A stretch of 64,000 nucleotides of DNA from Octopus sinensis (Eukaryota), in the NCBI RefSeq assembly GCF_006345805.1, contig NC_042999.1, positions 125,612,001-125,676,000 of the forward strand. The letters are read 5' to 3'. The notes under the pieces were generated by a model. It had not been told where the DNA came from and did no database searches. It worked only from the letters and a program-made list of their open reading frames with translations. Shown here in pieces: positions 2,337 through 26,807 of this stretch. The number at the start of each line of letters is the position of its first letter. Positions within the stretch are counted from its first letter, which is position 1. A program made the translations under genes and the position numbers.

Positions 2337-4237
2337 AATGGAAAGATGCATTGGAAAATGTCCCTAGTTACATTATGTAAGAAAAAAGGAAAAAAAAACA
2401 AACAAAACTAAATGTTCATGGATTGAGCACCTTTGATCATAGGTCTGCTGGATCAAAGCTGACCTGAGGTTAAACAACAGCAACTAGCATAACACTGTCT
2501 TAACTATGAAAATACTAGTATAGTAAACTTAACAACAAAAAACAATAAAAGTTGAACTGTTAATTACAGCAGAAACTATGTTCTATTTGAATCTGCTCCA
2601 TATACTTCAATTGCTCTATTAACATTAGTTATAATTTTAAATATCCTTCACTGCTTTGAGCAGCCTCATGATTTGACTTCAGCATAGATTTTTTTGTACT
2701 TTCTAATCCCATTTTAATGAGCCAATTACACTTCCACCTGACTGCAACAACTAGGTAGCAATAATTACAAAGAAAGAAAAAAAAAAGCTTTTTTTTTATG
2801 GAATTGGAATTACTTCACAAATAATTCTGAAACTTTAAGCAGTAAGCACTAACTTATTCTTGTACACACACACACACACAATATCAAAATAAACTTTGGT
2901 ATTGCAGTCAATATATATTATATAATATTCACGTAATGTAAAATGTGAATGTGTGAGCATATGTGTTTGAGAGAATGCTTTGTTTTCAAATAGCTTACGT
3001 CAATATAACTAATACACCTGTTACCTATGAGAAGATTAAACAGAAGGTGAAAGTTACCATCACCAAATATTAAAATGAACCATTAAACAACAAGATGTGA
3101 ATAACTGCAGAAAAATAGACATCTCTATATTACCAGAAGTTAAAACATCAGTATTGTTTGTAACTTACGGGAGTCAGAAATTACTTTGAGAAAAGTAAGC
3201 ATTAGTTAAATTACTTGGTCTCTATAAAAAACTTTATCAACTTGAAAAATGGCAAAATTAGAAAACATCAACAGTAAGAATTAAACTTATCAATCAGAAG
3301 CAACAGATTTGTTTTTTAATATTAACTTTTTATTTCTATTTTAGAGTCACAATGAATGATTAAACAACACTGCTTAAATAATTTGTGAAGTTGCCATTTA
3401 CTATATTTCTAAACTCTAGAAGGCAGGCTTCTAAATTTATTTCAATTTAAAAATCTAACATCAAATGATGTTAGAGCTACTAAGATTACATAAATTATTA
3501 GATCTAATGAATACAATTAACTCTGCCATATATCAGCATTAGTTAAAATGTCCACCTTTCTATACTAAAAAATATTTTTGTGATGGAACATTAAGAACAT
3601 AACCAAAAAGAATTTGAATTGCTGTAAGGAGTAGTAGAGTATGAAGTAAATTAACTCATATCTTGAGGGTAGCAGTGAAATTTTCCACACTCCTTAATTG
3701 CTTTATTCATTTTTATAAATATGAAAGTGGAATCTACCTATTAAAAACAAAGATTGAAAAAATTTACTAACTAGATTCAGCAGTGCATTACTGCTATATT
3801 CTCAAAACTGTTCATTCTAAACATTGACATATCTCTAATGTTCAAATTGGAATTATACTGATTAAAATAATTTTTCTACCAACCAAAGACAGATTAAAGA
3901 AATTTATGGTACTTTATTTCTTTTACATTTTTCTTGAAATATTAAAAAAAAAAAGGTACTTCTGGTAATATAGACACATACTGCAAATATAAGAATGTGA
4001 AGTTAGGAAGGAATCAGTTGAGAAAAAAAAGCTATTTTCCCAAATTACTCAGATATTAATTACTGAGCAAAAGCCATCAATGTAAGGGGGGAAAAAGGAA
4101 AAAAAAAAATACAAGAAATCATGCTCAGAATGTTTTTTTTTAATAACTTGTTTTAAGGTGCACAACCTTATATTCACAAATCTGCATTTTTCTTGATTTT
4201 TTTTTATAAACATTAAAATAACTAACCAAGTTCCTAC

Positions 4238-4249
4238 CTCCAAATCATC
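4238..4249 (-). CDS. AP1G1: Candidate 12-nt AP1G1 microexon (DDLE)
   Basis: catcttttgtgtattctgcag|GATGATTTGGAG|gtaggaac; phase 0-0, located right after the HFRK exon. Confidence 0.55.
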
Positions 4250-4875
4250 CTGCAGAATACACAAAAGATGTCAAACATAAAATCAGTTAAGTCAATAAGA
4301 AATAGGTCAAATAAAGCCACTTTATATTTAAAAAAAAAAAAAATGAAATGATACAATTTAATGTGAAACCCCCCCCCCCTTCCTTCTAAAAGAAAAAAAA
4401 ACAAACCCATTTGTTTGAAGTTCTGTATAAAAAAATTCATTGTCAGTCCAGCTGTATGTGCTTTTAAAGAGTATAACATAAAAAATGGGGGGAGCCAAAA
4501 AATTTAAGCAACTTACAAACACACCGAAAATAAAAATTAGAAAAACCTGTTTATATCTTACAATGTGAAATGATAAACAAATTGATAGATCTGCATAAAG
4601 CAAATTGTATAATGGTAAGGAATGATATTCGAGTTGTTTGTGATAAGCAATATCCATAGCTAACTTGAGATTTCAGTTTGTTGGATCAAACAGAAGAAAT
4701 TAATTGTGAATGATAATGTTGAAATTAAAAGACTTCTACAAAAATAATCATGTAACTTTAAAACAAAAGGGGGGGGGGCAAAATCCATTGTAGTACCAGG
4801 ATACTTGTAAGAGTTGATTTCCAAACATTGGTATATTGAGATCATACTATAACATTAATCTATCAGACTACGTAA

Positions 4876-8901: not shown

Positions 8902-8978
8902 CTTTCTAAAATGAAGCAGTGTGTCTGGACTCTTTTCACACATTTCTGTGATTAGGCAGACAGCTGTCAATAACACAC
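8902..8978 (-). CDS. AP1G1: AP1G1 coding exon (77 nt)
   Basis: (G)VLLTAVCLITEMCEKSPDTLLHFRK. Acceptor atttcag, donor AAG|gtaagt. The five exons total 642 nt = 214 codons. I did not find the next constitutive exon (LVPQLVRILKNL-like) in 1-8900, so it probably lies beyond the window. Confidence 0.96.
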
Positions 8979-20270: not shown

Positions 20271-20367
20271 CATGGTTTTTTTCATTGAGCAAAGACCTAG
20301 TTGCTGGAATGAACATTTCCATAAGATCTGGTACTTTTCTGATTATGCGAAAAGCACACAGAGTAGC
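20271..20367 (-). CDS. AP1G1: AP1G1 coding exon (97 nt)
   Basis: [32 protein letters not shown](G). Acceptor ttttacag, donor G|gtaagt. Confidence 0.97.
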
Positions 20368-23149: not shown

Positions 23150-23291
23150 CTTTTTCTTTATGTAAGCATTTGAAGACTTTAATAATTTTTCTACCTCTCC
23201 TGCTAAATCTCGGCTCATTTCTGTTGAGCATACAGAGCCTAAAGTACACAATGCCAAGCTTTGTATATATTGATTCTGATGGGTAAGATCA
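23150..23291 (-). CDS. AP1G1: AP1G1 coding exon (142 nt)
   Basis: (N)[47 protein letters not shown]. Acceptor ctttccag, donor AAG|gtaaat. Confidence 0.97.
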
Positions 23292-25451: not shown

Positions 25452-25673
<222 letters not shown>

Positions 25674-26606: not shown

Positions 26607-26807
26607 CTGACCAAAATGAGCTGGATAACCAAGCATGTGTATATATAATAATTTAGCCACATTTCTGCAACGATAAGTGTTATCTTCATCTCTAAATGAG
26701 TCCCTAATTTGGGCACATTCTTTGTTCACTACAGCCCGTTCATCAGCAGCAGTACGGGCTGATCGGATCTCCCTTATCAGGTCCCGTAATCTCTTCGGGG
26801 TTGGCAT
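26607..26807 (-). CDS. AP1G1: AP-1 complex subunit gamma-1, first conserved coding exon (exon starts at 26809; ATG at 26807)
   Basis: Translates to [67 protein letters not shown], the gamma-adaptin N-terminus. Acceptor ttttttgacag|GTATG, donor CAG|gtaagt; 201 coding nt. Confidence 0.97.

Follow-up and report, generated by a model that had tools for sequence, protein, structure and literature searches.

A conserved 12-nucleotide cassette microexon in the gamma-adaptin gene AP1G1 of octopus and other coleoid cephalopods

The 64-kb stretch of Octopus sinensis DNA analysed here, to which we refer throughout as the window, carries the first five coding exons of AP1G1, the gamma-adaptin gene, on its minus strand. 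The exons were located by TBLASTN with a gamma-adaptin probe and their splice sites were then read, so that each row of the following map rests on both the TBLASTN match and the splice sites.

26607..26807, minus strand: AP1G1 coding exon 1, which starts at the ATG of MPTPKRL
25519..25643, minus strand: AP1G1 coding exon 2
23150..23291, minus strand: AP1G1 coding exon 3
20271..20367, minus strand: AP1G1 coding exon 4
8902..8978, minus strand: AP1G1 coding exon 5, constitutive, which ends in ...LLHFRK and has the donor gtaagt

When joined, the five coding exons encode 214 residues (...SPDTLLHFRK) and the last of them closes in phase 0, its end at 8902 reading CATTTTAGAAAG followed by gtaagt. 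The next constitutive exon (LVPQLVRILK...) is absent from the 64-kb window as searched by TBLASTN. In O. vulgaris, the chromosome record of which (OX597816.1) is 99.25% identical to the window over 30 kb, this exon 6 (LVPQLVR) is found 18.6 kb further downstream.

Alternative exons are present elsewhere in the gene as well. An 81-nt exon of intron 4 (window 15056-14976, minus strand), which encodes (G)LPGHPGEGYIPCNRHAGRWARTVSPN, belongs to many isoforms of O. bimaculoides and O. sinensis and appears to use a GC-AG donor, given that gcatgt directly follows it. The same intron holds a 33-nt exon (window 19547-19515, minus strand; preceded by tgtag and followed by gtaagg), which encodes DHFSSVKPST and is carried by O. 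vulgaris and O. sinensis isoforms (P0121, P0126 and P0130). Further upstream, an alternative coding exon with an ATG start and a gtaagt donor (window 31744-31718, minus strand) encodes MANIFKTSI(G) and lengthens the N-terminus by 10 residues in many isoforms; the O. bimaculoides models have yet longer N-termini (MNHKSTT...), of which a part, VYLLALVLLN, is encoded directly 5′ of this ATG (31774-31745).

The microexon that is the subject of this analysis lies in intron 5, 4.65 kb downstream of the end of the exon terminating in HFRK (8902). It is listed here along with its splice sites.

4249..4238, minus strand: 12-nt alternative cassette microexon GATGATTTGGAG, encoding DDLE, phase 0-0 (gene models, Octopus/Argonauta identity and Sepia mRNA)
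4250..4300, minus strand: 3′ splice-site region with branch-like CTTAAC, CTGAT and TTGAC, a U-rich tract, UGC at -5..-3 and a CAG acceptor
4232..4237, minus strand: 5′ splice site gtagga, which matches MAG/GTRAGT at 6/9 positions with the exon end counted

An earlier note made from the letters of the window had proposed a 12-nt AP1G1 microexon encoding DDLE at this site, and the gene models, transcripts and conservation described below bear this proposal out. On the minus strand the sequence runs ...ttatgtttgacatcttttgtgtattctgcag, GATGATTTGGAG, gtaggaacttgg, with AG before the exon and GT after it, and the acceptor, the gtagga donor and the phase (0-0) read as that note had described them. 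The exon, flanked by cag and gtagga, has a length within the 3-27 nt range, contains no stop codon, keeps the frame and would place DDLE after K214 (HFRK-DDLE-LVPQ). The branch-like motifs TTGAC and TTAAC are present, as is CTGAT, but the pyrimidine tract, which had been called strong, is moderate, with 70% C+T at positions -22..-3 of the acceptor.

Such features are, however, not sufficient to recognize the exon. The 8.9 kb of intron 5 that lie in the window contain 143 in-frame, stop-free AG-(3..27 nt)-GT candidates compared to 145 +/- 14 in Markov shuffles. Upon setting a crude score bar at the values of the target itself (a YAG acceptor, a pyrimidine content of at least 70% upstream and a donor that matches 6/9 positions), 6 candidates, including the target, reach the bar as against an expected 1.8 +/- 1.3 from the shuffles. 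As the number of candidates is that of shuffled sequence and several rivals score equally, the sequence features do not go beyond chance. We dropped a microexon call based on the window sequence alone, since crude splice-site scores fail to separate the microexon from five other in-frame AG...GT candidates of the same 8.9 kb that score at least equally well. What confirms the exon is its presence in gene models and transcripts and its conservation, not its splice-site scores.

A protein search with the junction region identified HFRK-DDLE-LVPQ in an O. bimaculoides model (XP_014784171.1, P0003), and DDLE is also present in O. sinensis models of the same 90% cluster (XP_036357169-72, XP_029634178.1 and XP_036357174.1), which have sibling isoforms without it. 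Forms with and without DDLE are thus found among the models of both O. sinensis and O. bimaculoides (DDLE-bearing models P0003, P0127, P0130 and P0134). The newer O. bimaculoides models and the readable O. vulgaris models are devoid of the insert, which may mean that it is included rarely or only in some settings; two additional protein searches for short transcript fragments with DDLE, which used junction queries of 310 aa and 100 aa, brought up no cephalopod fragments. The earlier note had presented the exon as a candidate. The NCBI models, however, have contained DDLE since XP_014784171.1, and the microexon is thus already annotated in public RefSeq models; what we report is a confirmation rather than a discovery and, for this reason, adds little as genome annotation. 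We found no paper describing the octopus AP1G1 microexon.

Transcripts of the two forms are available from cuttlefish. In the decapodiform cluster, the 823-aa protein P0138 corresponds to the 819-aa representative P0004 with DDYE added at residue 215, and it is encoded on Logan mRNA contigs of five Sepia esculenta runs, among them SRR8281673 and SRR8281690. These inclusion contigs (L001 and L002) read AGGAAG-GATGATTATGAG-CTTGTT, the insert being DDYE. Skipping contigs were found in about 30 runs, which include SRR8281663 and SRR8281687, from the series of the inclusion runs, and whole-larva libraries; aligned with the inclusion contig, the skipping contig shows one 12-nt gap and zero mismatches. 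Given that contigs with and without the 12 nt are otherwise identical, the cuttlefish makes both isoforms. In S. esculenta, only 5 runs have inclusion as the assembled path as against about 30 with skipping, and within one series the two kinds of contigs come from different runs, the dominant isoform varying by sample. The assignment to S. esculenta was made via runs that have the same skipping isoform and are cited in PMC10466719 and PMC11917092; a full-text search on the accessions SRR8281673 and SRR8281690, or on prefixes of them, led to no cephalopod paper.

In O. vulgaris (L003:25883-25894) and in Argonauta hians (L004:22545-22556), the 12 nt of the exon and the AG and GT that enclose it are the same as in the window, and intron 5 of both species reads cag, GATGATTTGGAG, gtaggaacttggtta. 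BLASTN comparison of this intron between the window and Argonauta reveals only three alignable islands, of which the longest and best surrounds the microexon.

3958..4432, minus strand: conserved intronic island around the microexon, 79% identical to Argonauta hians over 488 aligned nt

Outside the three islands the intron, including the part that adjoins constitutive exon 5, does not align with Argonauta. The 488-nt island is centred on the microexon, and identity to Argonauta is 12/12 in the exon, 90% in the 30 nt upstream, 97% (29/30) in the 30 nt downstream and 85% in the 100 nt downstream, with 90% over 50 nt of the 3′ splice-site region. Conservation of an exon together with its flanking intron is the usual signature of regulated alternative exons. 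The octopus and S. esculenta exons match at 10/12 nt (TTG in octopus, TAT in the cuttlefish) and have the same third codon positions in both Asp codons and in the Glu codon; the last 30 nt of exon 5 differ between the two at four synonymous positions. The exon is therefore conserved in other cephalopods, as the earlier note had anticipated, with DDLE in Octopus and Argonauta and DDYE in S. esculenta. The same note's notion of a general mollusc version does not hold, as DD[L/Y]E is seen only in coleoid cephalopods and other molluscs have unrelated inserts or none.

The other two islands have features of their own. The first (window 7666-7486, minus strand; 74% identity), about 1.3 kb downstream of exon 5, contains a conserved CTGACTAxATCTAACA...GCATGTCTTTG block with a (U)GCAUG motif. 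The third (window 3163-3003, minus strand; 72% identity) shows a pyrimidine tract followed by AG/GT (tctcatagGTAACAG in the window and cacttagGTGGCAG in Argonauta), and is a candidate for a recursive splice site or an additional cryptic exon of the 20-kb intron.

An exact copy of GATGATTATGAG followed by GT is also found in Acanthosepion pharaonis (L005:7972-7983), 1,979 nt upstream of exon 6, as the only copy in the 10 kb before this exon. It could be an exon that has decayed, reflect a difference in the assembly or match by chance; chance matches to a 12-mer do occur, given that a second copy of the octopus 12-mer is present without splice sites in the O. vulgaris intron (L003:39470). As AT stands in the place of AG before the Acanthosepion copy, a pyrimidine tract is missing and the flanks show no similarity to the octopus island, we discounted the copy as evidence either way.

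The trans-Golgi network and endosomes are the sites at which AP-1 sorts cargo. Solved AP-1 gamma chains (PDB identifiers 1W63, 4HMY, 6CM9, 7R4H and others), when aligned with the cuttlefish inclusion isoform, all have a gap of 4 residues at K214/L215 and thus represent the skipping form. AlphaFold2 was run on residues 1-400 of the form that includes DDYE (mean pLDDT of 79); in the resulting model, the insert (residues 215-218) is located in the loop between helices 206-212 and 219-232, and the pLDDT is below 50 at residues 215-217. The model suggests that the four mostly acidic residues extend a flexible turn at the surface of the gamma-trunk solenoid. The 'back side' contact of Arf1 has been located on the central gamma trunk (review, PMC6627992), and an effect of the insert on this contact is conceivable.

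The earlier note had mentioned a small insert of vertebrate AP1G1 at this junction, and protein models do show NEK exactly there (HFRK-NEK-LVPQ). The 9-nt vertebrate NEK microexon and the 12-nt octopus exon reside in the same gene at the same junction (HFRK/LVPQLVR(ILK)) in phase 0-0, and both are frame-keeping cassettes of at most 27 nt which introduce a few charged residues into the same inter-helix loop. They differ, however, in length, in net charge (0 for NEK and -3 for DDLE) and in having no residues in common when placed in register. The zebrafish ap1g1 microexon is among 21 conserved neuronal microexons that were picked for deletion (PMC12626424), a study whose Figure 2A tabulates the neural enrichment of these microexons and their response to eMIC depletion, and its removal led to minimal larval phenotypes (PMC12626420). 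Neural enrichment and eMIC response are hence tabulated for the vertebrate exon, whereas the octopus exon is known from models and genomes and its cuttlefish counterpart from mRNA contigs.

A survey of this junction in about 200 gamma-adaptin models identified short inserts in several other lineages.

Amphioxus (three species and hybrid assemblies): QNK, alternative
Saccoglossus: NEE
A crinoid: FNDGE
Lepidoptera: ESGQRE
Orthoptera: DSGHRE and ETSHSE, alternative in Schistocerca
Culicoides: DTGSRE
Haliotis: GSRHD, GSKHD and GKE
Pomacea: ESE and GVFIIE
A chiton: EHSKT
Dreissena: TVPPGSDNHFK
An unidentified Logan mollusc: FQKDKFSAPC

The models of oysters, venerid clams, Mya, Ptychodera and Glandiceps have no insert at the junction. 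Haliotis and Pomacea each show two different short inserts at this same AP1G1 junction (P0008, P0140, P0155 and P0156), which suggests that the intron may contain two or more alternative microexons or splice sites. V-initial inserts (VR, VN, VS, VG, VKE, VSE, VSDN, VSVD and VRT), which occur in birds, scallops, a starfish, Gigantopelta, Drosophila and a tick, were not counted as cassette microexons; they are probable cases of alternative-donor read-through or mis-annotation, as the GT of a donor would be translated as a Val codon.

The 18-nt insert of insects ([DE][ST]G[QHSG][RS]E) resembles the octopus exon in being a short, charged insert at the same junction, alternative in Schistocerca, and differs from it in length and in its unrelated sequence, the insect insert being known here from gene models alone. 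Very short exons at an equivalent position across Bilateria have been described in APBB1/2/3 (6 nt) and MADD (9 nt), the neural microexons of which occupy the same position in vertebrates, insects and outgroups including octopus (bioRxiv 10.64898/2026.09.05.749416). These passed a formal test of exon orthology and tissue specificity, whereas our view of the AP1G1 junction comes from a gene-model survey in which insert lengths differ between clades. The same study, a 2026 preprint with O. bimaculoides among its species, describes as common a 'type I convergence', in which neural exons arise independently at equivalent positions of orthologous genes (bioRxiv 10.64898/2026.09.05.749416). The AP1G1 junction resembles this class in that differing short exons occur at one equivalent coding position in many lineages, but membership in the class rests on measured tissue specificity and the AP1G1 inserts are known here from models.

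It could be argued that the octopus exon is splicing noise or an annotation artefact, i.e. a functionless cryptic AG...GT pair put to occasional use and taken up by automated gene prediction, as its splice-site scores are ordinary, five candidates in the intron equal it and several annotation sets omit it. Such a view is difficult to reconcile with an exon and splice sites that are identical between Octopus and Argonauta inside a conserved island of an otherwise unalignable intron, with a cuttlefish mRNA insert at the same junction whose Asp and Glu third positions are unchanged, and with inclusion as the assembled path in five cuttlefish runs; it is largely refuted already and we consider it very improbable. 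How inclusion is controlled is a further point on which explanations differ. The UGC that the earlier note had expected near the 3′ splice site occurs at -5..-3 both in the window and in O. vulgaris but is missing in Argonauta, where the acceptor reads CUACAG and no UGC occurs in the aligned 40 nt. Control of the octopus microexon by the SRRM/eMIC system would be proposed only by way of analogy, and a second kind of motif offers another lead.

4120..4124, minus strand: GCAUG, an Rbfox-type motif 113 nt downstream of the donor, kept in Argonauta

The microexon may thus be regulated by a factor other than the SRRM eMIC neural programme, for example by Rbfox through this downstream GCAUG, in which case inclusion could extend to muscle in addition to neurons or could follow developmental stage. 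The conservation of the motif in Argonauta, a second conserved GCAUG in the first Argonauta-aligned island and the absence in Argonauta of the acceptor-proximal UGC expected of eMIC targets argue for this possibility, but the enrichment of the motif is weak (6 GCATG in 8.9 kb, of which 2 are inside conserved islands as against about 0.55 expected), and we regard control outside the eMIC programme as rather unlikely.

The occurrence of small inserts at one junction in models across Bilateria suggests either that microexons have occupied the K214 junction since ancient times and turned over fast, or that the junction is a hotspot at which they arise again and again. That the coleoid DD[L/Y]E exon arose independently, in an intron which has repeatedly spawned small alternative exons, and does not derive from NEK is a proposition that we judge to be about evenly poised. 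The inserts differ in length and sequence (12, 9 and 18 nt, and others), several molluscs and two enteropneusts have none, and a recurrent origin of neural exons at equivalent positions is described as common, with only the APBB1/2/3 and MADD microexons accepted as bilaterian-ancestral (bioRxiv 10.64898/2026.09.05.749416). On the other hand, a short and mostly charged cassette is present at the identical phase-0 junction in chordates, a hemichordate, a crinoid, insects and four mollusc classes, 12 nt are too few for homology to remain detectable, and absence from a gene model is weak evidence of absence. These observations could also be read as the legacy of a short alternative exon that was present at the K214 junction in the bilaterian ancestor and was kept in cephalopods, insects and deuterostomes while its sequence and length turned over. 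Alternative short inserts at the same junction and in the same phase in all three bilaterian superclades, the similarity of the three deuterostome 9-nt versions (NEK, QNK and NEE) and the several mollusc versions that are likewise 9 nt long and end in E (GKE and ESE) are consistent with such a legacy, which we nevertheless advance only tentatively and with some doubt, as the sequence is not continuous between clades, the distribution is patchy and AP1G1 is unnamed in the main text of the study on bilaterian-ancestral microexons (bioRxiv 10.64898/2026.09.05.749416). In its most far-reaching and, in our estimate, improbable form, the junction would harbor a third bilaterian-ancestral neural microexon after those of APBB1/2/3 and MADD, a charged loop insert that has drifted for >600 My (NEK, QNK, NEE, DD[L/Y]E and xSGxRE) and of which the cephalopod exon would be a neuron-controlled descendant.

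Irrespective of its origin, an exon that exists, is conserved, gives rise to two isoforms and places its insert in a loop is, with high probability, a genuine coleoid-conserved cassette microexon of AP1G1, which encodes the DDLE loop insert and the inclusion of which is likely regulated. Inclusion adds 12 nt to the mRNA and DDLE to the protein between K214 and L215; the added residues extend a flexible loop that joins two helices at the surface of the alpha-solenoid trunk, while the rest of the protein stays unchanged. The conserved intron sequence on either side plausibly makes inclusion depend on tissue, with neurons the most likely site, and the added acidic loop perhaps tunes an interaction of the AP-1 core and not its fold. 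The vertebrate AP-1 gamma subunit has a conserved neuronal microexon, and the large brains of cephalopods evolved independently. The presence of a different cephalopod microexon at the identical loop, and of inserts in insects and many other phyla likewise, suggests that this loop may have been chosen repeatedly for tissue-particular tuning of AP-1. The octopus exon thereby offers a comparative handle on the role of vertebrate NEK and on the question of ancient versus recurrently reinvented microexon positions, and we consider the wider pattern at the AP1G1 K214 junction to be the most interesting by-product of this analysis.

Intron 5 of the window also contains a 2,576-nt insertion (7298-4723), about 470 nt upstream of the microexon, that is missing in the O. 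vulgaris record. The alignments flanking it overlap by 6 nt, which may represent a target-site duplication, and the insertion includes a SINE-like repeat of about 140-220 nt, further copies of which are located near 33.7, 38.1 and 57.3 kb of the window.
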